NCBI GenBank assembly: GCA_003427395.1
Contig: BFEA01000012.1
Location: 2,102,711 to 2,162,659, forward strand
DNA: 59,949 nt
Source of the DNA: Chara braunii
Taxonomy: Eukaryota > Plantae > Charophyceae
Reading direction: 5' to 3'
The notes beneath the pieces were generated by a model. That model saw nothing but the letters and a program-made list of their open reading frames with translations. It did not search any database and was not told the DNA's origin. Every line of letters begins with the position of its first letter. Position 1 is the stretch's first letter. The translations under genes were made by a program, and so were the position numbers. Below are positions 16,623 through 59,882 of this stretch, in pieces.

Positions 16623-17211
16623 ATGTGTGTGTGTATGTGTGTGTGTGAGATTGTGTATCTGCTAAAAACTTCACAAACGTGCAGTGAATGTGACAGGCTG
16701 TTTCATCGGACTTCCACCCCACCAAATAGAGAAGCAAACAAAAGTTAAGGAAACAACAAACACAAAAGAGAACCCCGGAACAACCCACACACAATTCAAA
16801 TGAGAACAGAAAAGCAAGCAAAACAAGACACATCTCCCCACTACAATCAGCCCCAGGTGTGGCAGAGGATGATGTGTCAAGCAACAGGGCCCAGACGATG
16901 TCATGCCCGCAGTTGTGTAGCTATACAGTACTGTAGTACAATTTTCGGGAACATTAAAAGCAGCCCGTAAACCAGGGCGGGGATCTTCCCAAATTACTAA
17001 AATTTGAGAAATGCAAACTTTTGATCCACAAAATAGTGGCTGAACAATTCCGGGACAAGCTGAACCATATTATAGCCTTTCGAACTAAACGAAACTATTT
17101 TCTGACAGAACAAGCTTCATACTATAGCTCAGGAAATCAATGAAGGAAGATAGCAGGTGTATGAGTTTGCCTACGTACACCTCAGGCAGGAACTGCCACG
17201 TGCCCTCTGAA

Positions 17212-17276
<65 letters not shown>

Positions 17277-20212
17277 CCCCCCTTTGGTTTTCCCCGGACT
17301 ACATCCCTTTCTACTTTACCCATGAGCCACAGTAGCCTCCCACTCCAGGCTATCACTCGAAAGGGACAGATCTACCGTCTGCTCTGCTGGCTTATGAGTA
17401 CTCCGAGCTACAGTTCATCTTCTTCCTGCTATCTGAAAGTAGGAGGCTTGCTGCTGCGAGGTACCGTGCTCTTTCTTGTTCTTCTCTTGCTCCCGCCTTT
17501 AGTCAGTGGTGGGTTGGCAGACATTGCTGTTGTTCTCTCCTCCTCCTCCTACCTTCTTCCCTGCTGCTCTGCTGCTGGACCATCCAGCCGCACCATCATG
17601 GAGCTATGCTGGGGATTATCCAAGGCTGTGCACTACTGTTCACACAAAGGTCTCCAGGCTTGAGGTCACATCCAAGTGCATTGCTGGTTGGCAGTTGTGA
17701 GTACGAACCTGTCTAGCATGGTACGGTACAAAAGACTGAGCGATTCCTGCTGGGGGTTTTGACTTTCTGGACGCTAGAAAAGTATCCACATCTTTCAGAT
17801 GGGAGTCCAGCTATCGAGGTTGCATGGGAGGCTACATGGACCTACTTGAGTGCTTTTCGTGTGGCCTCCCGGAAGGCTTTCCAATGCCTTCCAAGCTCTC
17901 AGGTTGGCCTGCGGACAGATGAACAACAGATAGAGAATAGGTGTGCCCGACCGACCGGATGCACAGACAGACGAACAAACGGCCACTCCCCAACCTGAGA
18001 ACTTGGCAGGCAGGTTGACAGACAGATGGACAATCGGTAGACAAGAGATAGAGATGGACAGACAACCAATGAACAGACAGACAAACAAACGGAGGGACGG
18101 ACCAATGAACAGACAGACGAACAAACGGATGAACGTACAGATAAACGGACAGACAAACACGCGACCGACCGACCCACCCACCCACCCACCCACCCACCAA
18201 CCGACCGACCGACAGACAGACAGACAGCCAACCGACCGACCAACCTAGCGACAGACAGACCAGACCGACTGACCAACAGACCGACAGACAGAAAGAAAGA
18301 ACGAAAGAAAAGTTTCTGCATGCAGTCATGAGGGGGGGGGGTGCATGAGGGACAGACAGTCAGACAGACAGGCAGGCAGACAGGCAGATCGTGAGAGGAC
18401 GAGGAATCATTGCAGAGCTCACCGCACTACCTAGTTCAAGATTATGCTGGATGAATCTTTTCAGGTAGTTGAAAACCAGTCGGAGATCTGGGCATGCAGC
18501 AGTGCTGCCAAAACCATGGGATAGTGTCCTATACATTCAGCTGAGGGTGCCAGCATGAAGGCATTATGCAATCTGTCCGGATGTGGCCAGTGGAGACAAA
18601 AATACTTTGGAGCAGTTGCTCGCTACCCAACGTCTCCCTTACTGTGCCCGTGGCCACAAGAGAGGACTGTGCTCAATGCACTCTTCAGTAAGAACTGGCG
18701 CAACGAGCTCTTCAGTTCTACTATGGGACAAACCCCCGGGATCAGGAGCTTCCGCAGAGGGAGTAGAATGCTCAACAGTCAGTTTAATCTTGAGTCCATT
18801 ATAAGGCCCCGCAACAAAGAATTTGACGAAAAGCCACTCCCTGGGAATACATATAATGGCGCCTTCTACTCCTCGGAAATCTCCAAGTCAAAGGTTAGAA
18901 CAAAGAGTTCCTCTCAGCAACAACTGATTTTATTCACAGCGTCACACTGTGGCGACTGCATATGCAGAGATGAAAGGAAAACACAAAGCTACCTTCTTCC
19001 CCCGAATACAACGTACAGTCATTATAGCTGTATTTAGACTGAGAGATACCCCAAATACAGCAATAATGACCGTACGTTGTATTCGGGGGAAGAAGGTAGC
19101 AACCACACTCGAACCTCACATTTGATACTGCAGCCAGAATTAAGATCCACACATCCCAAGGGGAAAAGAAAAAAAGAAAAAAACAGCAAAAACAAAACCA
19201 AAAGATCTTTTATCATGGATGTGGCGATGGCTGGAAGGGGAGGCAAGGGGAGCCGGGGGGGTAGGGGGAAGAGGGAAGGGGGAAGGGAAGGATTCCTGAG
19301 GCCACAGTATCTTACCATGTCAGGCCGAAACATCGATTCACATGCACCGTAGAGTGACTCCGAGGATGTGCCAGAGACCACAAAGTCGCTGGAGAATTGC
19401 CTGCTCGTTCCAGAGAGTCCAACAGAGAAGACTAGTCAGAACGCATCACATCTCCAATTGCACAAGGAACTTGCCTACACACATTGCCAAAAGCCTGGCC
19501 AGACTGATGGACTCCAGCATTAAAATTCGACAGCAGTTGAGCTGCTTCCACGAGCGGCAGAGGCCAGACCATTCCGTGCAACCAACGAACAGGAGCCTCA
19601 GCACTCGCTCAGCACAGTCGAGATCTCTCGCTTCATCTCCTCCACAGCAGTCTCGTCATCAGGGCTATGTAATAAGACACCATAAAGCACCCCTAACTAC
19701 GGCCTCTGAATGCTATTTCACACCGGCCAGGAGCAGGCACAAAATTGTAGGCGCGAGGCCTGTCAATATTCCCACTTGCATCCATGTGCTGCTGCCCATA
19801 GGACCAGTCCCTCAGAAGCGAACGTTTCTATGACAAGAGTGATAGGGCTACTGAAGCAACCCCGTGCGTTGAACTCAACGTCCTGGAAAGAGTCTCCAGG
19901 CAAGGGTAAGGTACAAAGGCAAACGCCAAGTGCGTACCACCCTCATAACGCCAGGCCATCACCACAGCCGACCATCCGCTGCTTCCAAATCCAGCCTGTT
20001 CACGTGGGCGTCCACGCAATACATGCAAGGCCAGATTGGAACCGAATTATTTTCAGCTTTAAGTTCCACGCGCCCCTTTTCAGATCCGGTAGTTAAAGCA
20101 GAAAATAATTCAGCCTGGACCACTGCACATCCCGGTGTAGATCACGAATACTCCTGGTAGTTCCTGCCCAACATGTACGTAGGCACGGATTTGAGGGGGC
20201 CAGGGGGAGAAC

Positions 20213-20245
<33 letters not shown>

Positions 20246-21866
20246 GCAACTAAGAGGGCACCTGGCAGGTCCTGCCCAGGGTGTACGTAGGCACCTCCTC
20301 GCTTGACACAGGGCTGGGAGAGAAGAGGAGGGGGGAGACCTGGGAGGGTGCGGTGAGGGGGGGGGATACATTGCACTAGAACATGTACGGTAGTAAGAAA
20401 AGGGAGAAGCTGGCGATCAGATGGAGGATTTCCTCACCCTGGGACCAATAACAATAACATTAGACGCTTAAGGAGACCAGCACTCGCCCACCTTTTCCCT
20501 TGTCCACGCTGGGTTTTCCAGCGGATTGTGAGGTTTTCTTACCTCAAAATGTTTTCCATTCAGAAGCAACACACCTGTTACCTTTTCAAATGTGGTGGGC
20601 GGAGGGTGTTTTGCAGGGCAACGGGGAGGAGGAAATGGGGGGAGGGAGAAGGAGGGGAGCAGGGGGAGCAGGGAAAAGAAAGGGAGAAGCAACCAGGAAG
20701 AAAACACGACCGCACTTCCGAGCGCACCAAAACCGAATCCTTCTAGAAGCAGGACAGGCGGAGGGACGGAGGGACGGAGGAACGGAGGAATGGAGGCATG
20801 GAGGGACGGAATATGAGACTCTTACTTTGCACCAAGAAGATCTGTGGTACAGATAAATGGTTTACCGTCGTCGTCAAGGCCAGCAATGACAGGTTCACAG
20901 AAGTATGGCCCAAACCTGCCATCCCATACATCAAAGAATACAATTGCCGGCCGCGAACACAAACAGCATGCAAAGACGGCAAAAGGGGGGAGGAAGTCAG
21001 TTCCCACACATTTTTCTTTGCAGCTGCACCACAAGCAATGAACCTTCACTGCAGCTGCCGAGAGCAAAACCAGATTAGTAATAAACCCTAAGAGTGCTTG
21101 GAAAAAGACGTCCTCCAAATAAATAAACCCTAGTCATACCTGTGATACGAATTCCGTCACCTGTTCTAGAAAAAAAACATCAAATCCAAAATCCTTAATC
21201 GCACAACCAAGCCTCAGATAACGAAGCACAGCAAGAACACACAAATCGAATCATTAATGTCACAAGCTTCAGATTACGCAGCAGAGCAAGAACACGACAG
21301 AGGTTATCAGAGCTTACAAACGAGATCACGTTCGACGCAACCTGCCCTTGCAGTCAAAGATCCTATCCCACCCCCCCCCCCCCCCCCAAAAAAAAATGCT
21401 CAGATCGGCAGCACCTCTACTGCCCAGCTCTACCCACCATATTATCAACGCATCGCCTCCGAATAACCACCCACCCATCCACACACACACACACACACAC
21501 AGTTACTGCCATTCTCTTTAGGGGTTTGGACCAACAGTCTGCTAGGATTGCAGGGTCGGTGTGAGCAAACTCTGGCCGACGTGGTGAGTCCTTATGCATC
21601 AGTCAAATGCATCCCGGGCACGACCTCCTCGGTGAAAGTCCGACGAAAGAGTTTGGTCCGGTCATGTTTTTCTTCTTTTTTTTTCCTTTTTGTTTCCCTT
21701 TTTCTCTCTTTTTGGACCATTTCTCCATATATGCGTGTCATCCTCGCGCAGGGGCCATGCTAATCTTCTCTGTATCGTGACAATTTAAACGGATTGCCCC
21801 GGAAAACAGTCGTGCATTTCTTTTGGTGTCGTGTATGGGGAAAATGACGACACGCGCGCACAGACA

Positions 21867-21921
<55 letters not shown>

Positions 21922-25934: not shown

Positions 25935-26650
25935 CGATTTAGTGTGACAATATATACTGTCACATGATATAAGAGCGCCAAAGCGACATATATATATCGT
26001 CCCATGACTATATATTATATATATATATCGTCACAGTTTGTCACGGCCCCTCGTTTGTTGTCCTCTTCTCTCTCTCTGCCTACGGTTTTACCGGGCAGTT
26101 CTGTTTGTGACGATATATATCGTCACAAACAGAACTGCCCGGTAAAACCGTAGGCAGAGAGAGAGAAGAGGACAACAAACGAGGGGATATATCGTCACAA
26201 ACAGAACTGCCCGGTAAAACCGTAGGCAGAGAGAGAGAAGAGGACAACAAACGAGGGGCCGTGACAAACTGTTTCGTCGGAGTTTATATGTGCTTGTATG
26301 TGGGACTTGTCATCTAGGATTTGTTTCCCCCTGTTTTGTTGTGTAAAGGCTGTTTCCTTCCTCTTTTCTTTGCCTCTTTGCCCTTTGGCTGTGTGCAAGT
26401 GGGTCGATATGACACACGGAGGTGGGGGCAGCCGCCGTTCAACCTACATCCACGTGGGCGGCCTTGTACGCAAGAGGTTTTGAACAGGGGGAGTTGTAAG
26501 TAAGAAGATAAAAAATTAATTGATTTTTTCTAGTGTTTTTTCGCTTTTGCGCTCTGACAGCTTTGTGACAATATCCTGTCTCGCGCGTGCACAGACGCGC
26601 GTGAACTAACATGAAGTTGACCTCAAATAATGTCTGAAATAGTAAGACAC

Positions 26651-32090: not shown

Positions 32091-33569
32091 ATGACTTTGA
32101 GGGTTGCAGTAGGAAAACACTCAAGTAGCGGGAATAGGCCTGTGATCAGGATTGTTTGCGTTCGGGAGAGGCCGAATGCCCGAACGTTCGGCACCCCCTC
32201 TTGACGCGTTCGACCGTTCGGCCGAACGAGGACCCAAATAAAAAATAAACTTCCAAAAAATCTATAAAAAAAATAATGTTATGCAAAAGAATATACTGAA
32301 CAACATTTGCCTCAACGTTACATGGAAATTTTTGACCAAATTCAAACTCAAAATCAAATTATAAAAATAAATAATAATAATAAAAATTACAAAAAATAAA
32401 ATGAGAATAAAATTATGAAGTGGGCGAGCACGTTTTTGACACCGCCATTTTTGGCGATTTTTTTTTTTTTTTACTATGACAAATGCCATGAAAATTTATA
32501 TATGTGTATCTTACGTAATATAGAATTTACAAATAAAGTTAAAAAAAATAATTNNNNNNNNNNNNNNNNNNNNNNNNNNNNNNNNNNNNNNNNNNNNNNN
32601 NNNNNNNNAACAGAATGGCTTCAAAATTAAGACGGAGATACCTTACATCACAAAGAACTCACAAAAAAAACTTCAGAAAACAATAATAATATTTAGGTGC
32701 CAAAATATTTTTTTGCGTTATCCACACCCCCTCAAGTCCGGGCCCCATACGAGGACTCGAATGTCCGAACATTCTGGGGTTAGCTTAGGGGCCTCCGTAC
32801 ATTCGGCCTGATAGTCCTGCCTGTAGCAATTAGAGCCACTCAAGTAGCAAGGAGAGGCCTGCGACGCTTATAGCAGCAAGGAAAACACTTAAACATCAGG
32901 TACGCCCGTACTAATTAAGTGGCAGTAGATGCGTTGGGGACCAGCCGCCGAGTAGCAGAAGTCAAAAGTTAACATTTTTAAAGGCTCGGTAGCGGTAGGT
33001 AGACTGTTATTTGTCCAAGTAACCTGAGTCTATGGCCCGTGTGTATGATAACAAAGTCTGCAATGATGTTTTATCTTTGAAAGGACGCAGGTACCGGTTA
33101 GGGTGGCAAAGAGGTAAGAAAATCACCGCCCAAGAGACAAACGTCTTTCTACGTATGAGAGACCGAGCAGTAGCCTCAACCTCACTTTGCGGTGTATAAG
33201 TTTGCACGACATGCAACTCGAGCAAGTGCTAGCATTCCGAGTGTTATTCCAATCCCGTCGATCATACATTTATAATGGCCTCGACCGTATGGTCGGAGCG
33301 TTAAGTCTTTTTGTGTGTCGTAGGCTTACCCGATATAACACTAACCCAATCGAACCCCCCATTTGCGATTTATTTTTCTGTTAAAATAATTTTATTTATT
33401 TTTAAAATATTTTTTTCATAAAAATCGTGACAAAATATATGGACACTCGTATTTTCAGAGTTGTTGATTCACCCTTTTGAGAGTAAAAAATCGTGAAAGT
33501 TGGGGTACTTTTCCCTTTGGCCCAGACGTGGTGGAGTGACAAAAATTAAAAATGCGATGAAACTGCGCG

Positions 33570-35130: not shown

Positions 35131-36080
35131 AAACCATCACTCCTCCCGCCGGCTTAAATTCGACTTCCCTGACCCTTTGGATCCGGTTTTTAAGAGGGGT
35201 GGCGAATGATAGGCATAGGCGGGTCCAGTCCCGCAATTTTCAATCACCAACTTTGATGATTTTTCATGTTTAAAAAAATTGACAAACAAATATGAAAATT
35301 AAAGATCCTATATATTAGGTTATGCAGGGTCAGCAGCCCGTACGTACGGAGGTCCCCAGGCAAACCTCCGTACGTACGGGCGTTGAGGGTCTAAACCCGA
35401 CGACTTTTGACCCCCGCCAAAAAAAAAATTGGGGCCTAAAAATAATTATTTGTTTCTTGTTTTGTGAGCTTTCTATGTCGTGAGGTAAATGCCTGTAAAT
35501 TTTCAAGTCATTTGGCTAAGCCAACAAAGAATTAAAAATCCCCAAAGATGCCGGTGTCAAAACGTGCTCGCCCACGTATTTTTTCACTTTCAACTTTTTG
35601 TTTTCACTTTAGTTCGGGGTCCAAACAATTTTCTTATTTTTTGAAAATTTTTAGTGGGTTTTGTATTATGTGAAGTACACATCTGTAAATTTTCAGGACA
35701 TTTAGCTACGCCGAAAAAAATGAAAAATCGCCAAAGATGGCGGTGTCGAAAACATGCTCGCGCACTCACTAAATTTAATTCTCTTTTTATTTTTATTTAT
35801 TTTGATTATTAGTATTTATTTTTCGTATTTTATTTTTATTTCAAATTTGGTAAGGAATTCGGATGTAATGCTCAGGCAAATCTTGTTTAATTCATTTTTC
35901 TCCATAGCATATCTGTTTTTCAGATTTTTTTGATGACTTTTTTTTTTNNNNNNNNNNNNNNNGTATTTATTTTTCGTATTTTATTTTTATTTCAAATTTG
36001 GTAAGGAATTCGGATGTAATGCTCAGGCAAATCTTGTTTAATTTATTTTTCTCCATAGCATATCTTTTTTTCAGATTTTT

Positions 36081-36597: not shown

Positions 36598-37440
36598 TAT
36601 TTATCTCTGTTGTTTCATATAGAGTACGTGAGGGGGGAGTGGTGGTTTGATATATCTATGTTGTTTCATTTAGAGTACGTGGATCAGTAACTTATTATGG
36701 ATAGAAAAATGACAATTACTTTGAGCAAAACAATTGTGTATTATGATACCCTATGATACCATGACAATTCATTTGGGAAAAAAAATTGTGTATTATGATA
36801 CCCTGTGATACCATAACGGACTGTGAGATATATAATTCGAGCACACTGCTAAAACGGGGAACCCATCCTCATTGGATGGTGAAATGTATTGTTTTCTTTT
36901 CCCACTTCTACGTGATATGGCTAATATGACTCTCTTATTTACTCGGTTTGAATAAGGACATTTGTGCGCTTAGCGATATCATCGTTTTACAAATCAAATT
37001 TTAGTTTTTTTACTTTTTTTATTTCACGTATTATTATTTTTTACACAAGAATAATATACAAAGTTATCGTCCACCTTTTAATTTAATGTACATAGTTTTT
37101 TTTTTTTTTTTTTTCAAGGAAGATTTTCATGCCCGACCGAGCATCCAGGTGTGACACCTGGGGTACCTCGGACGTGGATAAAAACAATAAGATTTTTTTT
37201 TTGTTTTGCCTTGAATTCTTTTAGAGGACTACAAATGCGGGCTCATTTTGTTTTTTGCAAGTTGGCTTTCAAAAGGGGGGGGAGAGGGCATAAATTGGTT
37301 TTAAAGAAGGTGCCTCAATATATATATATTTTTTCCTATCTTCGATTCCGTTAGGAATCTAATGTCACCCTCAACAAAAAGTTGTTTATAATGCAATTCT
37401 ACACAATATATGTTTAATTGGATTTTATTTTTATTTATTA

Positions 37441-40700: not shown

Positions 40701-43700
40701 TCTGGCCATATCCTTCATTGCTGCAGTTATTTCACTTAGCAACAACGGTTGGTCCAAAAGTGAACTTTCGGCCTATGAAACGAGTCTGTGAGTTGAGCCC
40801 CAAAGGTGTTCCTCCCATTCGAGAGGTACCACTGAGGCTGTTGGGTTTTTTTTCTGAGGTGAGGAGTTTCTCATAAAAAAATACGGACGTAGTCACAGAT
40901 TGTTTTTGATGCACATGGCGGGGTCTGGGTGTTATCGAAGGGATGCGCGAGTTCTCCCATTGGGGGGGAATTCACCTTTCCTTCTAACACTTTGAGGGTT
41001 TTGCTGTTCATTTTTGTCCTTGTGGAGGATATTGTCGATTTGTTTAAATTTGAGCCACGATTCATGTTTTGTGATTTGGATCTCTTGCCATTCCTGAAGC
41101 GACATGGATCTCCTAAGGGCCCAGTGGCTATCGGAAAAGGAGGACTGCCCCATGCGTGCCTCCGCTTTCTCGATGTTGCGGATGAGAGTAATCTCCTCCA
41201 ACCTCCTATTGACCGCTTTAATTCTAGATATGTTGTTGACAAATCCTGAGAGAAGATGGATCCCCTTATCTAGCCAATCCCCATCCTCTGGGAATAGGTT
41301 GGATGAAGATCTCCACTCCTCCCAAAAGTTACGGACCCATTCTATCATGCTTTTATCATCAAAGATACGCATATTAATTTTGAAAGTACCTCTCCCCTTT
41401 GTGAGAGAGGGACCCGCTGTTAACGTGATAGAGTTAGGTTTGTGATCTGATAGGGGGTGGGGGGTAATTTCCGCTTTGTGAATCAATGGGAGAGCCCTTT
41501 CTGTACAAAAAAAATGTCCAACCATCTGTAGACGATTGGAGAATTGCTCGAAAACCAAGTGAAATTGCGTACATCAGGGTTGAGTGTGCGATAAGGGTCA
41601 AAAAGTCCGACTTCTGCAATCATCTCACTGAGGGATGCAGACTCGGATGGATTGGACAGTGGGGAAGAGGAATCCAGAGCTTCATTCGGCACTGTGTTCC
41701 AATCCCCCCCTACAATCAGGAAATCTGAGTTTGGGATAACTGAGATGAGACCTTGAAAAAATTGAATCTTGGCAGTGTGGTCTGTGGGTACACAGAGATA
41801 AAGGTCTATTCCTGAGGACCAATCTGGAGTGATACTTTGGTCCATCTCCTTGTCGGGTCTGTCTCCGACTGAGAGATAGAACTGCACAGGGAGCTATGGA
41901 TCAGAATCCCTATGCCCCCTCTGGTGCCCTCTGCCGGGGCCCAGACCTGGGGACCTGTCCACCAATCCCTCAGCTCAGCAATGAGGTCGCTGTTGAACTT
42001 AGTCTCGTGTAGCAAAATGATTTGAGCATTGATGTAGTGGATCCAGGATTTGAGACTGGATCTTCTATGTTTCCCATTTTCATTTACTAGTCCTCTCACA
42101 TTCCAGGAGATCACCTTTACCTTAGAGGCCATCCGCGTTACCGGACGGGGCCGATGGTTGGATGACTCCTTGGATTGTCAGGGGACCTCCTGACTGTCTA
42201 ACTGCTGCCGCGTTAGCCAGCAAGGCGAGATCCCACGAGGCCTTCAGCAGATCTGCAAAACTGCGTGTGAACAGTTTCATGTCACCCTGGAGACAAGCGT
42301 TGGTTTCTGTAATTATTTCACCTCTGATCCCATCCCCAATTTCGGGATCAATCTTTCCTTCTCATTGGATTCCTTGAACCAACTAAGCGGGGCCCAGTAA
42401 AAATTTGAACCTGCTGAGCCGATGCGGCCTCCAGTTAATGACACTGTGTCCAAGCACAGGGCATGGATAGAGTGTATCTTACCTAAAGCACCAATCTTGT
42501 TGAAGGAAATGAGAGGGTGATTTGGGATGGGGCGAACAACGCACACGTCTTGTACGAGCGACCTGCCCAGGTTGAAGAGTTGTACTGGGTCTGGGACTGC
42601 ATTGACTATGGAGTGGTGGATTGTATAGCCACCTTCTTGATTTCTAAGGAGGAGGATGTACGGTCCCTGGTTGGTAGTCTTCAACAGCACAGGGACTACA
42701 ATATGTGCCCCTGACTGTTGATTCCTCTTCCCCTCTTCCCCTCGAGCGGGGGCATCCATTCGATCCTCCTCAGATTCCTCCTGCCTCGACCTTTTAGGAA
42801 AGCCGGTTCTGAGGAATCTATCTAGGTTCATTCCATCAGACAGTGTTCCGCCTGCATCAGGAGGGACGTTCCTCCCTTGTCCGGATCTGTCATTGGGATC
42901 AAGTTGCCGAGTCGTTCCAGATTGAACTGTTCCAGCATTGGCTTGACCTTGCCCCTTCGGTGGGAGAGGGCATGTTGCTTGGCTGCTAGCGGGAATGGTG
43001 GGAATTTTCAGGAGCCACGAGGGGCCCTGAGATACTGGTTTGGACTGGTTGGGAAGACCCAGGTTGGACGGAGCGTGCTCACCTTGTTTCCTTTAGTAGT
43101 TACCAGTCTTCTTACCCTGCGGTTTTGCGCCTGCTGAGGAGGTAAGTAACTGCGGGTTAAGCCATTGAACCGATCTTCCATATGAGCCTTTGTCTGCCGA
43201 ATGTTTGGGATTAGTGTCAGGTTTAAGCTGTTGTTGTGAAGAGGAAGACTTGGAGGGAGGGGCTGAGGTGTGCTGTTTCCCTTTCTCTGGACGTCCCACA
43301 TGCTCCATGGGAGTGGGACCAGATGGGAAGTCAGCGCCTTCTGCAGCCTTGTCCAGACCTNCANCATCGTCTTCACACAAACAGTCGCCNTCCAGCCTGA
43401 TGTACCGTTTACAACCAGAACACCAAGGGGTGNTGCTGTTGACAAGATCCCCTGNCAAGTATCCTTTGGCCGTGAACACTTTCAATGAGCGGACAAATTT
43501 TTCTTCAGCATTGGGGTGTAACCCGAACTTGATGTTACCGAGGTTAGGGTCTATAGGGTCATTGATTATGTCGTAGTCCTTAGTTATTTTCCCCATGACC
43601 ATTTCGATGCCCGATCTTATATACATTGAAGCATCAATCGGGAATCTCATGGCCATGACCCAGTAGACCTTCTTCTTCTCCTCTTCTCTGTGTGCCAGCC

Positions 43701-44560
43701 AGTTTGCCTTTGGCATCCAGGGACGAAACAGAATCCGATAAGTCTTACCTTTTTCCACGAATCTCTCCATTCCTTTCTGAATCATCCATTCCGAAATTAG
43801 GGGAAGCTTCAGGATGTAAGTCAACTGCATCTTGCTTTCGAAATTAGTGAGACCTCTGTGTGTCAGAAGTTTGTCATCTGGTAACAGGGCGTCCTCAATT
43901 GATCTGAGCAGATCAATCTTCTTGTCATTGGGGAGATTCTTTGCTTCACCTTGAAAAAGAATAGCTACCGCGTGGTGCTTTAGGAATTCTTATTCTACCC
44001 TTCGAATGAATTCCTTCGGACGAATTTCGATACAACTGTCCTCTTCATTAACCGAAGCCTCAATGTAATCAGACACGTCAGGTGTGGATTGATTGAGATA
44101 CCATCCCCCCACCATTGCGGCCAGGTGTGTGAGCTCTTCATTTGGCAAAGGTTGAATCGTGGTGGGGCCCTGTTTTTTTGAGGATTCAACGTTAGATCCG
44201 TTGATGCCTGGTGTGGCTTCCATATCTGCGTATGACCAGGTAGCAGTCTGGAGGTATTAGCGAGTGGAAGATTAATGGGAGTAGAGAGAGAGGGTTCTCA
44301 GTAAAGAGGAAAGGCTCTTGGTGTATGTGGGGTTGGGGATGCAGAAGTCGAGGTGTGAGTCAGAAGCGAGGTGTCGGATACCAGGTGTTGTCGAGATCCG
44401 ACTTGGATGACTATGTGCCGTATGGGAGGATTGACAAGAGTGAGAACACAACCCAGTGTCAAGGATTGGAGGTATGAGCATGTATGGAGCAAAGGGGGCA
44501 ATTGGAGGATCACTCCATGCGGGAAGGGAGGAATGGGCCTGCGCAGACGAGTGTATGGGG
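37716..44560 (-). mobile_element. Near full-length L1/Tx1-type LINE (ORF1 44223->42122, ORF2 42132->about 37978), disrupted
   Basis: APE endonuclease ISWNVRGL, LHETK, GGDWN, SDH; RT PGPDGLPVEF, RPISLLN, RQGCPLAP, LADD; C-terminal CDVC..EDSSHLWWEC zinc finger; poly(A) (plus-strand T-run 37716-37729). A few frameshifts and stops. Confidence 0.93.
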
Positions 44561-44650
44561 TGGTATGACAAGAATAGGGGTAGGAGATGTCCGACGAAAA
44601 AAAAAAAAAAAACGTGTTTAGTGTTATGCGGAAAAAGGATTTGGATAACA

Positions 44651-44926
44651 CTAGGCTACCAGAGTGGCCCGGGGTCACTTGCCCGGCCAGGCCAAAAAGA
44701 TAAAAAAAAATAAAATATTTTAAAATTTTATTTTATATTTTAAATTTGGTAAAAGATTTCGATGTAAGTCTGAGGCAAAAGTTGTTTATTTTATTTTTCT
44801 ACATAACATATTATTTTTTAAGATTTTTTGGATTTTTTTTTTTTTGTTGGGACCTTCCCTTGTCCTTGCACGGGCTGGTAACCCGGGGCCCGGGCGGCCC
44901 GCCTGGTAGCCTAGGCATAACATAAG

Positions 44927-46920: not shown

Positions 46921-49900
46921 TGGGAACAAGTCAACAACAAGCTTTGACATATGGTTACGAGTGAGCACCGAAGGCCACATGGGCTTCATATTCGAGAAGC
47001 CTGCCTCCACATCCGTATCTGATGCCATAAGCTGAAGCGTGGGGATGAGTTTCTCAATGACCAACCTGCATGCGTTTTTTCATTGGATGTCGTAATGACT
47101 TTTCCAGAGAGGCATGAACAGCAGCAGAGAAGGGATGACACAACAACCAGGTAACATGCTTTCCGGGTTGAGACGCCCAAGTTCTGGTGAAAATCGCTTA
47201 CGAGGCGAATCGTCAGAGAAACAAAGAAAAATTAGTGAAGGAGGGGTTGATATTTCGTTAGACCTCCAACCAGAGGACTCAGATAGCTTTACTGGTTCAC
47301 ATGCCACCTCTTCGGCAACAGGTAAGCGGAAGTCACTGCGCCATCGTATGGATGCTCTATCCAAAGGTTAGTCTGTAGTGAAATCAAGAATTATGCCGAT
47401 AGTATGTACCTCGGTAAGGAATGGACTGTGGTTTATTGCGTGGATTGGCTTAGATGGTGCACCACTGCTTTTCAATTTTGTTTGCCCAGAATCCCCCATG
47501 CCACACTCAACAGCTACAATGGCTATAACATTGTTTCGGGACAAATTTGTCTCTTCAAATTGTTGAAGTATCGATGCCTATATTTTTTTTGGATATTGAT
47601 GGAAAAAAATATCATTGTTATACCCCTCTGTTTGATTGCCGCTTTCTTCCAGACCAACTAGAGCAGTTGGAGCAGGAAGGTCTCCGACTGCTCCCGTTAA
47701 CCTGGCTTCTGGAAGCGAGGAAATCGGAATTGCACCGGATAAAAGTCCCCCCCTCTATGATGGCGGAATTCCTGTTTGATCTGAACATGAAGTTGGGGAA
47801 GGATAAAAAATTAAAGTTGGACTCCTCTTTTCTGAAATGTTTTTTAATAGAAGCATGACCATCCTCCGCTCCTACTGACGTCTCCCATATCCAAGTTGCT
47901 AGAGCAGTAGCCCCTTATGGGCAGACTTAGATTGGCCACTCTGAATGTACGTGGGCTAGGAGATTCGGCATGCAGAAATAAGAAAGATTGGCTAAAGAGT
48001 GGGATGCATGACCGTAGAATCGATGTTTTATGTATCTAGAAAATTGAACTCTCAGACGATAAGTTGAGTTGGGATCATAATGGGACGACCCACGAATCTG
48101 GTCGTCAGCCAGAGGCTAAAAAAGGGGAGTCGCACTCCTAATTCGCAGAAATCTACATGCACAAATAATTGATTTTTGTGTTGATCTTGGGGAAGATTGA
48201 CATGGATTAAACTATGGATCGAGAATCAGAAATAGATCATTGTTTCGGTCTATGTTCCGACAGACCTGGCTGAACGTGCTGTGTTTTTTTAAAACCTCCT
48301 GTTGTTTATCTCGGTGTATGACCACCTCGTAATTGCAGGTGATTGGAACACAACGATCGATAAAAATGAGGGAGTTCGGGGAGGGCGGGACATGATAGCC
48401 TTGAAGGATTTAATATATGATTTGGATCTAATTGAACCCTATCCTCTCCTTCATCCAGGTAAGCCAGCATACACCCGGTTTTCGAATGTTCGAGAAGGGA
48501 CAGACACAGTCAAAGAATACTAGATTTTTTTCTACTCTCGCCCTTGGTCTTGCATGCCACTGTGCAGATTGACAAAACACAAAATCCCATATCTGGCCAT
48601 AGACATGTCATTGCTACTGTCAATGCTAAAAAATTGGAAAGAGACCCTGACTATTTTAGGTTAAATATGCAACTCCTTCATGATCGAGGAGTGGTAGAAT
48701 GAATGACGTATTTCTGGAAGGATTGGGAGGCGAATGTAGACTCATTTCCTTCAAATGACACATGTTGGGAGTCAGGTATTCAAGTCTTTTCCAGACATTT
48801 CTAAGCAGAAGGATAAGGAGCAAGGTTTGATTCGTAAAATCGAATATGCTGAAATACGGATGGACAACCACCTTATCTCAAACTTGGTATGGGGCCCCAT
48901 AAAGAGGAAACACCTTGTCGAATGGGACGCCTACCAGTTGGAACAATCTAAGGTATGGGTTAAACTCCTGAAGGTTAAAGGCATCGAGATATACGATCGT
49001 ATGACCTGTAAAACTTTTCAAAATTTCTTGCCCAAACGTCTCACACACTCAATTTGCGAATTAACGCACCCTTTTGATCGTGACTCTCCGAATGTACCAG
49101 ACCAGACTCAATTGTGTGCTTATGGTGCTATATACTACCAAAACATTGCTCACTAGGAGACGAGATGGAGATAGTACTGAAGATCTTTCAGAAGATTTCT
49201 CTCACAGGGACCACTATGCTAAAAAAATCTCCCCCCAAAAAAGACTGAACATGGATCGCCCAATTACTACGAAGGAAGTATGAGAAACCTTGAGTTATAT
49301 AGCTAAGGGCAAGGCCCCTGGTGATGATTGTCTGCCGGTCGAACTATATCTAGTAGTCTGGGAGTCCATCAATGTTTAACTAACGGGGATTTATAATCAG
49401 GTACTAGTAAGAGGTAATTTATCTATGAGCATGAGGAATGTGATTATTTCATTACTTTACAAGAAAGGAGATAGATGAAAGATTAGGAACTGGAGATCGA
49501 TTTTGGTCCTCAACGTCTCATACAAGTTGTTCGCCAAAATTTTGGCTAGGCGTGTGGGTAATTACCTTTCATCCCTGATTACTAACGATCAAGCGGCCTT
49601 TGTACAAGGTAAATCGATCTTCAATAACATTGTTACTACCATTGAGGCCCTGGAGGTGGTGGAGAATGCACAGACAAACATCTTTGTTCTGATGCTTGAT
49701 CTTGAGAAAATATACGATAGGGTTAACTGGACGTATGTACTAACAACTTTGAGACACGTGGGATTTGGCGATAACCTGTGTAATTGGGTAGTGACATTGT
49801 ACTCCCTGTTGACAACCTCGATGAAATAGTAATCTTTCAATAGCCCTTCCCTCTGACCCGCTCTCTTCGACAAGGATGCCCTTTGACACCCCTTCTTTTT

Positions 49901-52900
49901 GTAATCCAAATAGAGAACCTTTTGTGTAATATCTGATTCAACCTCTCGATCTCTGACATTAAGGTCGATCCCTCTCAGTGTAAGGTGAAAACCCTAGCAT
50001 ATGATTTATGTGCAATTTTTGAAAACTCACTGAGGTCAATGAATACCTTGAAAACCTGTCTGGATGAGTACTTAGAGTTATCGGAAGCCTCTGTAAATTG
50101 GGCAAAATCAGTGTTTTTTATCCTCAATATTCACAAACTTATTGTAAATTGGGAAATGAAATGTATTGTTGCAAAAAATTCTGAACATTTTTTAGGCGTT
50201 CAAGTTTTTATTCTTTCGTGTAGCGTTGACAAGGGTATTTGCCGGGGATTTTTAACGTCGGACGTGGTCCGACCTTTTCGTTTAATTGAAGGACATGATG
50301 AGATTGACGTTTGTCAAAAGTTATTCAGACCTGACCTATGAATGACATACTAAAAGTTTTCGAAGTTGAGTCCAAACGTGTGTGGCGTCCGATAGTGATG
50401 GCAGTAAGCGGTCGTGCCTCGCCTTTGGCGAAGCCGCAGGAATGTGTGCGCATGGGAACGGTAAAGCTAGTCTTACTCTACCTAAAATAATGACGCGTGG
50501 CTGTTAAGCCGCGCGATTTAGGGTCTAAGTAGGCTAAAAAGAAGGACGCGGCGAGGGTAGGACCACGACGCGGAAGGAATAAAATGTTTTTTTAAATTAT
50601 TTGAGCCGCGAGGTTTGACTTTGAGCTAAGAGGCCGACAGGTCAATGTCGGGGCTATACCCATGACTTAAAGGTTGGCTTTGGGGCCGCCCAGCTGAGAC
50701 GCCTACCGGGTGGACGACAGAGCGACAGGTTAGAGGGACTAGAACTAATGTTGGGTTTCACGCTTGGTTGAGACTGTCCTAGTTGACCGGCGTCTGCTCC
50801 GCACCTAGGAGATCAACGCCCTAGGAACGGACGACGCTCGGGTCCACTTGGCGTTAACCAAGTGTATCTATACTACAACGAACGAGCAAACGCCCTCGAT
50901 TGACCTACCTCGGCAATTGCATTTAAAAGCTTTCACACGTGGGTCAGTAGCTCGGTAGGGATACGCCCCTCGTGTTCACTTGGCATTAACCAAGTGTATC
51001 TGTACTACAACGAACGAGCAAACCCCCTCGACTAACCTACCTCGGTAATTGCATTTAAAAGCTTTCGCACGTGGGTCAGTAGCTCGGTAGGGATACGCCC
51101 CTACGGGTGGTGACAACCCCTTAGGGAAGGAAAGCTTATACCCCTCGGAAACCTATCCTGTCGTAGGGGACCGAGGGATGTACAGTTGGTGCACCCGGCT
51201 AGAGCGGCGAAGGGACGATGCGACCCCGGTCGTCTTGGCGGTTCGCGCGGTTATTATGCGTCCTCGCATGGTTATTATGCGTCGTTCCTAAGTTGTCTCT
51301 TAGTTTTGTTATGTTTAAACTTCTGCGTGACATGGCTGGGAGGACTCTTGCCTTTGCGAAAAACGCGAGAGCCGATGCGCTCGACAGCGTAAACCAGAAG
51401 GGTATTTTCCTCCAACGCTCCTTGTAGCGAGTAGCGATGTGGGGTAAAGCTACACACCTATCCCTCTACGGAAGGGTACTGGTTATCAATAGTGCCCTAT
51501 TCTCCCTCCTTTGGTTTGTGATAGTTGTTAGGCCTTTGGACAAGCATTTATGCTTCCTAATAAGGAGGAGGGCAACCCGTTTCATTTGCCTTATGCAACC
51601 AATGATGAAGGCTTCATGTCGATCTGCTTTGCTTCTCAAAAGTAGAAGGAGGCTTGAGATTGATTCACCCTCGAAGAAAGAGTATTGCTATGCTGGTCCG
51701 ATGGGTTATTAAAGCAATCTGCTCACTGAAAGATTCTCACTGGCTAGCTCTTGCGGAGGAAATCTTAGCTGTCGAATGAAACCTCGCACGTCCCTCGGAT
51801 GTTTTAACATATTTTTTTCTCAACTCTTACCAAAATCGTATAATCAAGTTTGAGTTATGAAAGGCTGTGATGTATACATAGAAGCAACTCAAGCCAAATG
51901 TTTGGTTGAGTCCTACCACGGAGAATGAAATGCTGATGCAACCCTTATTTGAGAACCCTGCAATCAGAAAAATTGATTGGAACTGGTTTTCCGCCGACTC
52001 CTCATGAAATAGTCTTGGAAAAAGTTGGATAGACTGGGGGGTCATAAGGATTGACAATATTTAGAACCTCTTGGAGGGATAGTGGTATTCGACAAGGGCA
52101 CTGGAAAAAATGTTGGGCTCGGTTTGATATATGGAAAAAAGGTTAGTGGAACTAATTGACGCTATCCCCATCCAATTGAAGGGTATCCTGGGCCCAGAAG
52201 GAATTGATCCACCTGGGACCTAATATATTTTCACTTCGATAGGCTCCATCCCTATATTTTGGAAATTGGTGGGTATTGATTCCACATGGAATAAGGAATT
52301 CCAATGTTGGGAAGGTGTTAATACCTTAAAGCCTTGTCAACTGATTCAACTATAAAATCCAATACATCCTTCCCTCCCCTACATGTCGGTGTGACCCAGA
52401 TCAGGGTATGAGAATCCTGTGATGAAGAACAAAATTGGACTTGTAAAGTTCTTGCACATAACGTTGTATTAACAGAAGTCGAATTTGGACCCGAGGATGT
52501 GTGGATGAAAGGGGGCAGTGGTGGATAAGATTTTCCTCTCATATCCTATACGGTGCACCAGGGTTACACATCACAGACACCCACACCGTCCCGGTCACCC
52601 ATTGATCCAACAGTCTCCATGTGGAGTCAGATATTGGATTGCGGGAGAAAAAAAATTGAGAATGCAATCTCCAAATATTGGAACCAGTTATCGCAGGCAC
52701 CTAGCCTCAGGTTAGCAGTAAATCTTTGACTGCTTTCCCTGTTGGCCACACCGTCGACGGTAAATCTGGCACAGAGGGGCATAAAGGTTGATCTAGCTTG
52801 CAAAAGGTGTAACTGTGCATTTTAGTTAACCCCACACCTTTGGTTTGATTGCCCGACTTCAAGCCGTATATGAAAATGATGGAGCATATTCTGGGATGAT

Positions 52901-55222: not shown

Positions 55223-55570
55223 NNNNNNNNNNNNNNNNNNNNNNNNNNNNNNNNNNNNNNNNNNNNNNNNNNNNNNNNNNNNNNNNNNNNNNNNNNNNNN
55301 NNNNNNNNNNNNNNNNNNNNNNNNNNNNNNNNNNNNNNNNNNNNNNNNNNNNNNNNNNNNNNNNNNNNNNNNNNNNNNNNNNNNNNNNNNNNNNNNNNNN
55401 NNNNNNNNNNNNNNNNNNNNNNNNNNNNNNNNNNNNNNNNNNNNNNNNNNNNNNNNNNNNNNNNNNNNNNNNNNNNNNNNNNNNNNNNNNNNNNNNNNNN
55501 NNNNNNNNNNNNNNNNNNNNNNNNNNNNNNNNNNNNNNNNNNNNNNNNNNNNNNNNNNNNNNNNNNNNNN
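55223..55570. other. Assembly gap (others at 32554-32608 and 35948-35962)
   Basis: N runs. Confidence 0.99.
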
Positions 55571-56548
55571 GTTGGGTAAAGGGCAGGCGATGAGGGGGGA
55601 TTGGTTTCTTCTTGGGATTCGGTGTATTTTACGCGTAATGTGCGAAATTGCAAGTGAATCTTCAGCTTGAAGGTTGACAAATACGCTTCAAGTATGTCAT
55701 AAAGAGATGGCGGGGATTGCAGTCCAAATGTGTCATAAATGGCGATTGTATCTGCGGCTAGAAGGTGCAAAGATGCACGCTATATTTGTTTTGGTCTTTT
55801 TCTCACATTCGGTGAGCGATGGAGCGAGGCTCCTTCTCATTTATATGGTATCGATAGATCGAGTCGTTGCTTGCTCGAGAATGTGTTTTATAGATTAATT
55901 AGTTAAGTTTGTTGCTAGGTGGATTGTATAACATATATGTTGACTACCATCTTCCCCCCCCGAACATAACGCACCCTGAAAATGAACGTATAGAAGTCGT
56001 CTTTCCGGTCCGATGCAGTCAAAATGAGGGTGCGTTGTGTTCGGGGGAAGACGGTAGTTTTGTTTTGCTTGATCGGTGATTAATTAGAAAAGATTCCTTG
56101 TTTCACATACAGTGATCTCCGGCTGAAGGGACAAATTACGAGTACTACCTTCTTCCTCCGAATACAACGTACGGTCATTAGAGCTGTATGTATTTAGACT
56201 GAAAGATACCCCAAATGCAGCTATAATAACCGTACGTTGTATTGGGGGGAAGAAGGTAGTGAGACAGGACCGAAGAAAATGGATGTAATGGATGATACTA
56301 TAGCAAGATAAATAAAATGGACGGTTCTGATTTCATCTGAAATCAATCATTCGACGTGGGTTTGGGGGCTGGGGGCGTCTGATTTGGCATCGGGGTAGGG
56401 GTACATCTGTACTTTGTGCATCGGGGTAAGGGTACCTCTGTACTTTGTGCATCGGGAGCATCGAAGTTTCCTCAGGTCTCTTAGCTTGCCGTCGTCGGAT
56501 TCCGAGAAGATGGGACTCGCCGCACCACTGTCGAAAGGCGAAAAAAAT

Positions 56549-56638
56549 GAGTGCATCTTCCTCAGAAAGTGGCAAGATGCATCTGTTACTATTGCTAGCA
56601 ACGGATGCATCTTACCGCTTTCTGTGGAAGATGCATTC
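56549..56638 (+). other. 90-nt near-perfect hairpin; second copy at 57477-57555
   Basis: 43-bp stem with 3 mismatches and 3 G-U pairs; 4-nt loop TTGC. Confidence 0.8.
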
Positions 56639-57744
56639 CTCCTTTTCACTTTTCAACAGTGCTCTGGCGAGGCCCGATGAATCGTGATTGTGGCGGTAGA
56701 GTACTGGGGTGTATGTGTGTCGGGATCCGGCTTGTCCCGACAGGCCCCGTCTCCTTTGCGTGCTCTCCTTTCGCCTTCTACGTCTCCTTGGCTCGCTGAT
56801 TGCTCTCTTCTCTCTCTCTCTCTCGCTTTACTTTTCTCTCTCTATCTCTCTCCTTTTTTCTCTCTCTCTCTCTATAGCCTTGGTTTCTTTCTCTCAGCTC
56901 GCCTCTCTTGCCTGTCCTAGAGTAACGTCTCTCCTTTGCGAGCCTCCTCTTCCCTTCTCCGTTCCCCTTGGCTCCCTCTTTGCTCCAATCTCTCTTTCTC
57001 GCCCTGATTACGCTCTCCCTCTCTCTCTTCTCTTCCCTGTCCTATCTGTACGCTCTCTCTCTCTAACACTTTTTTTCCCTTCCGCTCCTCCCCCCCGCCC
57101 CCTTCCCCGTCCTTTTTTTTTCTCTACTCTCTTTCCCGTTCATTCCCTTTTTGCCCTTCCTTGCTGTCTCGCCTTTCTCTTCCTGTCCTTTCCTTTCCTG
57201 TCTTTCACTCGTCAGGTTTGCTGTATTTTGCGTTGCTATCCCTCTGATTTTTGAACGCTTTCGTTTTGTCTCCCCTTTGTTTGATCTCCTCATGTGCGAT
57301 GCATCGAACTCCTCTCTCTTTCTCTCTCTTTTGTGTGGTGCAGCGTCGTCTTCCTCTCCTTTTCCTCTTTCTCCCGCACTTCCTTGTCCTTCATCTCTCC
57401 CTTCGCTCTTCTTCCTTTCTTTTCTCTCCTTCCTTTCTTTTCTCTCCCTTCTTCCTCTCCTCTCCTTGTCTGTCTCCTCAGAAAGTGGTAAGATGCATCT
57501 GTTACTATTGATAGCGACGGATGCATCTTACCGCTTTCTGTGGAAGATGCATTCCTCCTTTTGTCTCCCTCTCGTGTCTTCTAAGCGCCGGATTCGAACT
57601 CTTTCCTCTTTTTTTCTTTTTTTTCTTTTGTTTCTTTTGTTTCTTTTTTTTTTGTCTTCTTTTTTTCTTCATTTCTTTTTTTCTTTTTTTTCTTTTTTTT
57701 CTTTTTCTCTTCCATCCCTTCGGCCCTTCCGTTTGTTCGGTCTG

Positions 57745-57922: not shown

Positions 57923-57988
<66 letters not shown>
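57745..57988 (+). repeat. About 33-bp G-rich minisatellite followed by about 64 nt of poly(G)
   Basis: TGGGCTGATGGAGTGGGGGTGGGCTGT units; G-run 57925-57988. Confidence 0.9.
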
Positions 57989-57991
<3 letters not shown>

Positions 57992-58157: not shown

Positions 58158-58444
58158 GTACCTCATTCACAATATTTATTTAGGAACTCGTTTCATTTAC
58201 AGTAGTATTTACTGTATTTATTTATTCAGGGAGTACTCGCTCCTGGTCTTTCCAAGATGCATTTGCCCTCCAGATTCAGGAGATAAAAAAAAGTCTCAAG
58301 TCTTTTAGTGTGAGTATGCCCGTACTCTATTGCTCGATCAGGACTCGGGTGCCTTTCTTCTCGTACCGGGAAACGGAGCAAAACTTTTCTCTGCTTTTTT
58401 GTGTGCGTGTGTGTTGTTGTTGTTGTTGTTGTGTGTGTGTGTGT

Positions 58445-58527
58445 TGTCATATTCGCTATGCACACAACTCCAGAAAAAGCATGACTGTGCAGACTGTTTC
58501 GTCAGCCTTTCACGGACTTGTCAGGAG
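58445..58527 (-). mobile_element. Partial copy of the hammerhead element, next to (GT)n and cut by (GA)n
   Basis: Minus CTC-CTGACAA-GTCCGTGAAAGGCTGAC-GAAACAGTCTGCACAG; G8 is mutated. Confidence 0.75.
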
Positions 58528-59566
58528 AGAGAGAGAGAGAGAGATTGGTGACTGTGTCGGGGACATTCTTGTGCCCAGTCGACCTGTAGTAATGGGAGGA
58601 CGGGAAATGATTGATTGGTCATTAATGGATGAGAGATCTTTATTTTGAAAAATCATTTGGGTATCAGACGGATCTTGACCGTTGGTTTGAGGTAGAAACG
58701 TTTTATTCGTGCTGATCATTAAGTCTATCAATCAGATAAAATCAAATCAATCAATCAATCAATCAATCAATCGATCGACCAATCAATGAGCAAATCAATG
58801 AGCAAATCAATCAGTCAACCAGTCAATCAGCCAATCGATCGATGGGTCAGCCGTCTGTGTGTGCCATCAAGAATCATTACGGACAGCAATTCACAGATGT
58901 GTCGGGATGATGATCCGGTTATAGTCGGGATCTGGATGCATCTACATCGGTGTTTCATTCCGACGATTGCGGACAGATACGGATGCATCCCTATCCCGAT
59001 CGTAACCGATGCATCCCCTCGGTTACCATGGATAGGGAAGATGGATGCATCTGGATATGGATGATGCATCTGGATGTGGATGATGCATCTGGATATGGAT
59101 GATGCATCTGGATCTGGATGATGCGTGCGTATTGATATCCACTGTGTTGGTGGTGATGGTCCGTTGACGATGATGGATATGGATAATGATATCTAGTCGA
59201 GAAAGTTTCTTGTACTTTCGAAAATACAGGCAAGTTAATTTCTTCTACTTGGGAAAGGAAAGCCACCTTCGCCATCTACTGCTGCTAACCGAGTGTTGTT
59301 TTCGTCTCGGTGCTCTTTTGCTCTTTGGTGGTTGGTCTTTTATTTCGTTCCCTGTATGAAAAAGGACGGTAGCGAAGAGAGAGAGATTTAAGAGGACCTA
59401 AGAGATTGACGATGATGGTGACGATGACGGAGAGGAAGCGAGATGAGAAATGAGAGTCGGAGGTAAAGAAGGTGGGCGAGAAGAGAATCATTCTTGTGGG
59501 AGGGAGGGTGGGAGAGGGAGGGTGGGAGGGAGGATGAAGAGTATGAAGTAGCAGGACTGTGCCGAA

Positions 59567-59623
59567 CAGACTGTTTCGTTGGATTTTCACCGACTCATCA
59601 GGAGGTTGAACCCCGACAGTCTG
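59567..59623 (-). ncRNA. Type III hammerhead ribozyme
   Basis: CAGACUGUC^GGGGU-UCA-ACCUC-CUGAUGA-GUCGG-UGAAAAU-CCAAC-GAA-ACAGUCUG: all core nucleotides present, stems I-III form, GUC cleavage triplet. Confidence 0.88.
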
Positions 59624-59813
59624 CACAGGAATACTCACACCAACCCCGCAATCGTAGCAGACTGATAGATAAGGAATCGCCACATCGCCCAGAGTTAGCG
59701 ATACCCATTCCTAAGAGAGAAGTGGCTGACTTTACTCACACCAACTCCGCAATCCTAGCAGACTGTCGGTCCAAACCCCTGACAAGAACGGAAGTAAGTC
59801 TGAGAAACTATTT

Positions 59814-59817
<4 letters not shown>

Positions 59818-59882
<65 letters not shown>

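Follow-up and report, generated by a model that had tools for sequence, protein, structure and literature searches.

A short, non-coding, hammerhead-carrying repeat family at (CA)n microsatellites in Chara braunii

Described hammerhead-bearing elements and the Chara braunii locus

Chlamys elements, a group of Penelope-like elements, insert at (CA)n microsatellites and are frequently 5'-truncated, and one of them, Chlamys-2_cBra from Chara braunii, carries a canonical hammerhead near its 3' end (Craig et al. 2021, PMC8557442). Elements that both target (CA)n and bear hammerheads are already published for this alga. Non-autonomous Chlamys elements exist, non-coding derivatives such as MRC1 of Chlamydomonas having 3' ends in common with autonomous elements, while inverted, 5'-truncated copies, located at the 5' side in Chlamys, are typical of Penelope-like elements (PMC8557442). 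Animal non-LTR retrozymes are short, non-coding, hammerhead-bearing and thought to be Penelope-dependent (Cervera and de la Pena 2020; Li et al. 2026, 10.64898/2026.07.22.740005), and have been argued to be non-autonomous Penelope-like derivatives (bioRxiv 10.64898/2026.07.22.740005); their hammerheads are of type I and they occur in circle-yielding tandem arrays. Plant LTR retrozymes combine a type III hammerhead with a lack of coding capacity and contain two direct repeats of 300-400 bp, each with a ribozyme, together with a tRNA-Met primer site, a polypurine tract and 4-bp target duplications, mobility relying on Ty3/gypsy machinery (Cervera et al. 2016, PMC4918200). De la Pena and Cervera (PMC5680766) have put forward a link leading from Penelope-like elements to plant retrozymes and viroid-like RNAs.

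Here we describe five related pieces, designated copies A to E (Table 1), in a 59,949-nt stretch of the C. braunii contig BFEA01000012.1, referred to below as the window. The copies resemble Chlamys elements in their location at (CA)n, 5' truncation and hammerhead near the 3' end, and perhaps in an inverted partial copy at the 5' side. Unlike Chlamys elements, however, they lack ORFs for a reverse transcriptase, a nuclease or a gag-like protein, and no pseudo-LTR or head-to-tail copy is present in the window; the likeness is one of anatomy. With animal non-LTR retrozymes the copies share their short, non-coding, hammerhead-bearing character, but the hammerhead is of type III and the units are single and dispersed at microsatellites. 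They are similar to the plant LTR retrozymes in ribozyme type and in the absence of coding capacity, although each copy has one ribozyme rather than two, and the 300-400 bp direct repeats, the tRNA-Met primer site and the 4-bp target duplications of those retrozymes are missing.

When 50 ORFs were scanned against Pfam only LINE domains were matched. The window contains two LINE copies, its two reverse transcriptases being LINE-type and one LINE ORF 351 aa long, whereas a Penelope-like reverse transcriptase and a GIY-YIG gene are both absent from it. The scan revealed no ORF domain near any hammerhead copy, consistent with the proposal, made in an earlier note on this DNA, that the family is non-coding. 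No host-gene domain was detected in the same ORFs. The further suggestion of selection against sense-strand intronic cleavage, which was based on three copies and on their putative antisense position in putative host gene models, is not upheld.

Table 1. Position of the repeat copies and associated features in the window.
Feature	Position	Strand	Description
Copy A	59530..59817	-	Longest copy, 288 nt on hammerhead strand; 5' end adjoins (CA)14, 3' end adjoins C-rich repeat
(GT)14/(CA)14 flank	59818..59845	.	At 5' end of copy A
Complete type III hammerhead, copy A	59568..59622	-	Predicted; Rfam RF00008 Hammerhead_3, model 1-54 fully aligned
Internal direct repeat of copy A (33 nt), first unit	59632..59664	+	Second unit 59733-59765, 94% identical, 101 nt on
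Arm 2	59757..59812	+	Inverted degenerate partial duplicate of hammerhead 5' half; CUGACAAG replaces CUGAUGAG; stem II absent
Copy B	21502..21867	+	5' flank (CA)11, 3' flank long (AC)n array; split by U6 retrocopy
Copy B hammerhead remnant	21626..21672	+	Stem II, GAAAG and start of tail; nhmmer E 5.5e-13
U6 snRNA retrocopy, full length, with A-rich tail	21675..21808	-	Inside copy B, on strand opposite to hammerhead
U6 target-site duplication	21807..21822 and 21659-21674	-	~16 nt; 12/16 positions match
Copy C	58445..58527	-	5'-truncated stub; 3' two-thirds of hammerhead and full 3' tail up to (AC)n
Copy D	16648..16722	-	5'-truncated stub; hammerhead stem II to 3' tail, at imperfect (AC)n
Copy E	26257..26288	-	32-nt scrap; stem II 3' strand, GAAAC and 12 nt of tail; no (CA)n run adjoining

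Homology, ribozyme and ends of the five copies

Comparison of the pieces with the window by blastn aligned copies A (59530-59815) and B (21490-21860) over 70 bp with 84% identity (E 1e-16), and copies A and C (58440-58530) over 55 bp with 76% identity (E 7.5e-6), the matches of copies D (16647-16720) and E (26261-26281) extending over only 21-26 bp. A nhmmer profile constructed from the cores of A, B and C alone found copies E and D, at E 1.4e-4 and 3.9e-4 respectively, and nothing else at E <1 in the whole window. The 22-nt core consensus, allowing up to 3 mismatches, matched the window four times, compared with no match in 100 shuffles, and copy E has an exact 14-mer in common with the core. 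These data show that the five pieces are decayed copies of one short, non-coding, hammerhead-carrying family, and that the family is real. The retrieval of both left-out pieces by the profile bears out the view, expressed earlier, that all five are homologues, and the unit length of 250-300 bp suggested at the time was roughly right with respect to copy A. The assembly gaps (32554-32608, 35948-35962 and 55223-55570) touch no copy, the nearest being 2.9 kb from copy C, and there is a single N, at 21934, inside the (CA)n array 3' of copy B. Four of the metagenome contigs scanned with the family ribozyme pattern were matched, with only the universal hammerhead core in common.

Hammerheads were assigned to type III on the basis of the CUGANGA ... 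GAAA core, an NUH cleavage site and three stems, of which I and II are closed and III is open. Copy A retains unbroken CUGAUGA and GAAA boxes and an intact GUC cleavage site; its stems I and II are closed, the latter with a single C-A mismatch, and the open stem III comprises 9 bp, extendable to ~14. The motif scored 46.7 bits, below the Rfam gathering score of 48.5 (E 2.4e-9 locally and 4e-7 window-wide). It is a predicted type III ribozyme, and the only complete one among the five copies. Rfam searches and alignment identified no complete hammerhead in B, C, D or E, where the cores are deleted, mutated or truncated; copy B has lost CUGAUGA and stem I, and in copy C the core is mutated to CUGACAAG. 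The description of the family as hammerhead-carrying in the earlier note is substantiated by the complete motif in copy A. This motif lies, however, on the complement of the strand that was written out there, and the element RNA most likely corresponds to the reverse complement of that sequence. No copy in the window looks active, all being decayed.

Together, the (GT)n/(CA)n runs make up 273 bp, or 0.46% of the window, and are distributed over five loci. A family copy adjoins four of these, in each case in the same orientation, the hammerhead strand reading (CA)n/(AC)n. As had been noticed before, the microsatellite is present beside four copies and on both sides of one; the doubly flanked copy is B, and the copy with no run is E. 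On the hammerhead strand the copies have a common 3' end ~45-50 nt after the ribozyme, adjoining (AC)n, while their 5' ends vary. Copies B and C both finish at GAAWATGAC beside (AC)n and copy D ends in a similar manner, the exception being copy A, whose 3' end lacks (AC)n. A fixed 3' end combined with variable 5' ends is what target-primed reverse transcription produces. Copies C, D and E, three of the five, are stubs of <85 nt that start ~10-28 nt 3' of the cleavage site, an interval derived from three copies whose detection needs the ribozyme core. No homology was found beyond the 5' break points of these stubs, where alignment scores were at shuffle level, and a continuation of any of them past these points was therefore rejected; the 5' end of copy C adjoins a (GA)n run. 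The 5' ends of A and B are 19 nt apart and both are at (CA)n, which argues for a defined short unit.

The inverted arm and a nested U6 snRNA retrocopy

Copies A and B contain an inverted partial duplicate, 27-31 nt long, of the 5' half of the ribozyme, which does not include the 3' tail of the element. This feature was missed in the earlier assessment that no terminal inverted repeat was evident. In copy A the local alignment between arm 2 and the hammerhead 5' half spans 27 nt, and 2 of 2000 shuffles scored as high. Arm 2 is predicted to pair with the true ribozyme, generating a long hairpin, the fold of the whole of copy A having a predicted energy of -99 kcal/mol (z -3.3). The possibility that the plus strand of copy A encodes another functional hammerhead was considered and rejected, as there was no Rfam match at E<=10 and both core and stem II are degenerate. 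Similarly, a conserved fold of the 3' tail was dismissed as RNAalifold returned zero pairs. Scanning of viral and prokaryotic genome contigs for the arm-2 motif gave no match.

Copy B is interrupted by a U6 snRNA (21706-21808, minus strand; Rfam RF00026, 78.4 bits, model positions 1-105), which was absent from the earlier note. The retrocopy has an A-rich tail of ~35-45 nt and does not finish with a U-tract terminator. Both sides of its target-site duplication align to a single stretch of copy C, which is uninterrupted there. Judged from these alignments, the U6 retrocopy is a separate nested insertion that entered copy B later. The possibilities that U6 is a part of the element, or that the two form a chimera, were rejected, since U6 has an A-rich tail and a target duplication of its own and the site is uninterrupted in copy C. 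The tail and duplication of the retrocopy show LINE activity on small RNAs.

A candidate mechanism and competing explanations

The best fit, by analogy with the described systems, would be a non-autonomous element related to those Chlamys elements that target (CA)n and bear a hammerhead. We consider it somewhat more probable than the alternatives combined (roughly 0.55) that the five pieces, old and now inactive, derive from a short (~200-290 nt), non-coding, (CA)n-targeted retroelement, likely mobilized by Chlamys-type machinery. From the anatomy of the copies we infer a mobile element, an RNA that is cleaved and a partner enzyme, as follows. The element RNA would correspond to the strand with the type III hammerhead ~45-50 nt from its 3' end. 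Nicked (CA)n microsatellites would serve as the target that primes its reverse transcription, every insertion having the same orientation. DNA synthesis would begin at the fixed 3' end and often halt early, generating two long copies (A and B) and three stubs (C, D and E). A Chlamys-type Penelope-like element would most likely supply the enzyme. The role of the ribozyme is probably to trim transcripts that are multimeric or arise by read-through, and in the long copies the inverted pseudo-hammerhead arm may trap the ribozyme in the long hairpin. The start of all three stubs shortly past the cleavage site would fit templates that were already self-cut. Several observations count against this explanation: an animal Penelope-like element inserts in vitro without the need for ribozyme cleavage (PMC11167929), the window lacks a Penelope-like reverse transcriptase or GIY-YIG gene and any head-to-tail copy or pseudo-LTR, and copy A has no (AC)n at its 3' end.

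The earlier note had offered a retrozyme or a non-autonomous Penelope-like element, and it is the latter that fits the fixed 3' end, 5' truncation, (CA)n association, orientation and, less clearly, the inverted duplicate. If the copies were true retrozymes, tandem or repeat-bounded copies would be transcribed, cut at two hammerheads and circularized, the circle serving as the template for reverse transcription. The type III hammerhead, which has the topology found in plant retrozymes and viroids, and the prediction that a whole copy folds into a rod-like hairpin are consistent with such a pathway. Each copy, however, has a single ribozyme, and the window contains no tandem array of the unit or LTR-like direct repeats, the longest direct repeat being 33 nt. 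A tRNA-Met primer site is absent near every copy, the sole near-match in the window, at 1184, being far from the copies and at chance level. With one ribozyme per copy, and lacking such repeats or a primer site, the loci cannot release unit-length circles; these features, together with the absence of an ORF, show that the family is not a plant-type retrozyme. In addition, the copies keep to one 3' end and are shortened from the 5' side, instead of displaying permuted junctions. The retrozyme option put forward earlier thus loses its footing, and we regard it as very improbable. A similarly low probability is assigned to a LINE-dependent, SINE-like element in which (AC)n is not the target but the element's own 3' tail, produced by reverse-transcriptase slippage. 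The two LINE copies in the window and the LINE activity on small RNAs evident from the U6 retrocopy are in keeping with this proposal. It is difficult to reconcile, however, with the (CA)n at the 5' ends of A and B and its absence from the 3' end of A, and with the lack of a tRNA-, 5S- or 7SL-like head in a tRNA search and in Rfam scans inside the copies. Indeed, the local LINE signature provided by U6 consists of an A-rich tail and a ~16-nt duplication, and the hammerhead copies have neither.

The pieces could also be the severely 5'-truncated 3' ends of a coding, hammerhead-bearing Penelope-like element, for example Chlamys-2_cBra, in which case there would be no separate family. Such an origin, although unlikely, is less remote than the two discussed above, as three of the five copies are short stubs; the proximity of the 5' ends of A and B, both at (CA)n, would not be expected if truncation were random over several kb.

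Returning to the preferred reading, a non-autonomous Chlamys relative, the value of the window alone is modest, as it provides decayed copies, one intact ribozyme and no sign of activity. If the family proves abundant and Chlamys-dependent, it would join a ribozyme type found in plant retrozymes and viroids, the type III hammerhead, with non-LTR, microsatellite-targeted, Penelope-like insertion, and, if true, this bears on the proposed descent of plant retrozymes from Penelope-like elements. A more far-reaching version, which we offer tentatively and think doubtful, is that streptophyte algae harbour a family of Penelope-mobilized (CA)n mini-elements with a type III hammerhead and an inverted arm, in which cleavage would decide between a full-length copy and a dead stub of <=100 nt, and which would represent a living intermediate to plant retrozymes and viroid-like RNAs. 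For annotation, the hammerhead copies and the nested U6 are repeats and not genes.

Homology of the copies and their ribozyme

The five non-coding, hammerhead-associated pieces grouped into one family by the earlier note (copies A-E in the table) are similar to very different extents. Pairwise blastn within the window aligned copy A with copy B (84% over 70 bp, E 1e-16) and with copy C (76% over 55 bp, E 7.5e-6), and gave matches of 21-26 bp only for D and E. An nhmmer profile limited to the A, B and C cores, from which D and E were left out to guard against circularity, recovered both E and D (E 1.4e-4 and 3.9e-4, respectively), with no further window match below E 1; a five-copy profile matched exactly five places. 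The 22-nt core consensus, allowing up to three mismatches, found four matches in the window compared with none in 100 shuffles, and a 14-mer in E matches the family core exactly. These profile, consensus and 14-mer matches indicate that all five pieces are genuine relatives, as had been proposed. The window holds five copies in 60 kb; no copy overlaps an assembly gap, and no family member was found in the public metagenome, viral and prokaryotic collections scanned.

Coordinates of the element copies and LINE remnants in the window (for copies, the strand is that bearing the ribozyme)
Feature	Position	Strand	Details
Copy A	59530-59817	minus	
Copy B	21502-21867	plus	
Copy C	58445-58527	minus	
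Copy D	16648-16722	minus	
Copy E	26257-26288	minus	
Decayed LINE	38299-44700	minus	RVT_1 39550-40260; zf-RVT C-terminal domain 38299-39354
Second LINE fragment	48293-50340	plus	endonuclease-like GDWN motif ~48.3 kb; RVT_1 49503-49829 (E 3.7e-10)

The hammerhead family in the window is real but decayed. Using E-value thresholds, Rfam Hammerhead_3 covers the full model in copy A (59568-59622, minus strand). The match scores 46.7 bits, below the gathering score of 48.5, with E-values of 2.4e-9 locally and 4e-7 across the whole window. With gathering thresholds a U6 snRNA is the sole Rfam report in the window, and no additional hammerheads were detected there at E<=5. The copy A ribozyme keeps the CUGAUGA box, the GAAA box and the GUC cleavage site, and displays type III topology, in which loops close stems I and II while stem III is open. 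Its stem II contains a single C-A mismatch at a place that is C-G in other copies. The hammerhead of B lacks CUGAUGA and stem I, the core of C is CUGACAAG, and D and E are truncated within the motif. The hammerhead attributed to the family is therefore present in A, but on the strand opposite to that written out in the earlier note.

Microsatellite association, ends and polarity

Runs of (GT)n/(CA)n, counted at five units or more, occupy five loci totalling 273 bp (0.46% of the window). Four of these loci hold an element copy and B is flanked on either side, in agreement with the association described in the earlier note; copy E lies away from any such run. The CA strand is the hammerhead strand in all four microsatellite-borne copies. 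Units of 141 bp (and 84 bp) are locally duplicated in tandem, with 95-97% identity, at 2490-2828 and 16311-16592, the latter directly upstream of copy D and its microsatellites.

In the hammerhead-strand orientation, B and C share a terminal GAAWATGAC that directly abuts (AC)n, their 3' ends lying 45-50 nt beyond the ribozyme GAAAC; D ends alike at an imperfect (AC)n, and A has no (AC)n at its 3' end. The 5' ends of A (~190 nt upstream of the cleavage site) and B (~100 nt) are 19 nt apart, and (CA)n adjoins both. The three stubs start downstream of that site (C by ~10, D by ~23 and E by ~28 nt), and no homology was found past their break points. A constant 3' end with varying 5' truncation is the mark of target-primed reverse transcription, and makes the hammerhead strand the likely RNA template. 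That the stubs start just past the cleavage site suggests templates that were already cut, a pattern drawn from three copies whose detection requires the core.

At the 5' end of A and B, in the hammerhead-strand sense, is an inverted degenerate duplicate of the ribozyme 5' half (arm 2), with alignments of 27-31 nt that 2/2000 and 8/2000 shuffles equalled in score. Arm 2 of copy A has no Rfam hammerhead match at E<=10 and was rejected as a working ribozyme. Through it the whole of copy A is predicted to fold as a long hairpin (-99 kcal/mol, z -3.3). Copy A also contains a 33-nt direct repeat, its two occurrences 101 nt apart, and no conserved fold was found in the 3' tail of the family.

Retrozyme or Penelope-like element

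The earlier note left open whether the family was a retrozyme or a non-autonomous Penelope-like element. The defining features of plant retrozymes are hammerheads embedded in repeats, together with a primer site, a polypurine tract and 4-bp duplications (PMC4918200). The first two of these features fail here, as the window contains no LTR-like direct repeats or tandem units of the element, and no tRNA-Met primer site close to any copy; on these two features a plant retrozyme is not supported. Animal non-LTR retrozymes are tandem with a type I hammerhead, whereas the window copies are single units of type III, and this candidate likewise does not fit. No tRNA-like head was found on the copies, nor protein domains adjoining any of the five. 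A metagenome contig, Ga0233425_10007717 (14.9 kb), carries four type III hammerheads (53-67 bits, above the Rfam threshold) within 2.5 kb on one strand (10258-12786), unrelated to the family save for the universal core.

The anatomy of the copies fits the Penelope-like kind, the other option offered, for which 3'-end identity with an autonomous element of the same genome would be the defining criterion. Green-algal Chlamys elements target (CA)n and (C)n, are frequently 5'-truncated and commonly carry an inverted truncated copy on the 5' side, while their non-autonomous derivatives have 3' ends in common with autonomous families (Craig et al. 2021, PMC8557442). In Chara braunii itself, canonical hammerheads are borne by Chlamys-2_cBra, in a 3' position, and by an endonuclease-lacking type kin to spike-moss PLE-X families (Craig et al. 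2021, PMC8557442). In an anole Penelope-like element an AC-rich stem-loop is the start of reverse transcription, and ribozyme cleavage is dispensable in vitro (PMC11167929). What the window contributes is a U6 nested in copy B, a corrected strand for the ribozyme and the clustered stub ends.

A nested U6 copy, LINEs and other repeats

A full-length U6 snRNA, overlooked in the earlier note, lies within copy B (21706-21808 minus, 78.4 bits, model 1-105). This sequence has no terminal U run and leads into an A-rich stretch. The insert is bracketed by 16-nt stretches (21807-21822 and 21659-21674, 12/16 identical), which both align to one single stretch of copy C, uninterrupted at this point. On these grounds we interpret the segment (21659-21822, minus) as a LINE-type retrocopy that inserted later into B, with a ~16-nt target-site duplication; the A-rich stretch, the duplication and the intact copy C led us to reject U6 as part of the element. 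As upstream promoter context is absent, the U6 copy is a pseudogene. The window holds two decayed LINE copies, that at 48293-50340 being interrupted by stops and frameshifts. A (TTA)24 run (37425-37498) may be the 3' tail of the other. The plant-like U6, the zf-RVT LINE and the type III ribozyme all accord with Chara braunii as the source.

A near-perfect palindrome of ~85 nt (26073-26160) gives sub-threshold matches, on both strands, to several miRNA-precursor models. Overlapping it, and adjoining remnant E, a 72-bp unit occurs twice at 100% identity (26115-26258). Homopolymer runs of G41 (4361-4401) and G65 (57925-57989), and a T-rich tract of 98 nt (57609-57706), could be either genuine low-complexity sequence or errors of assembly. 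The conceptual translations of 56336-56652 and 57066-57580 (minus) are almost identical, and a dispersed repeat therefore lies between hammerhead-element copies.
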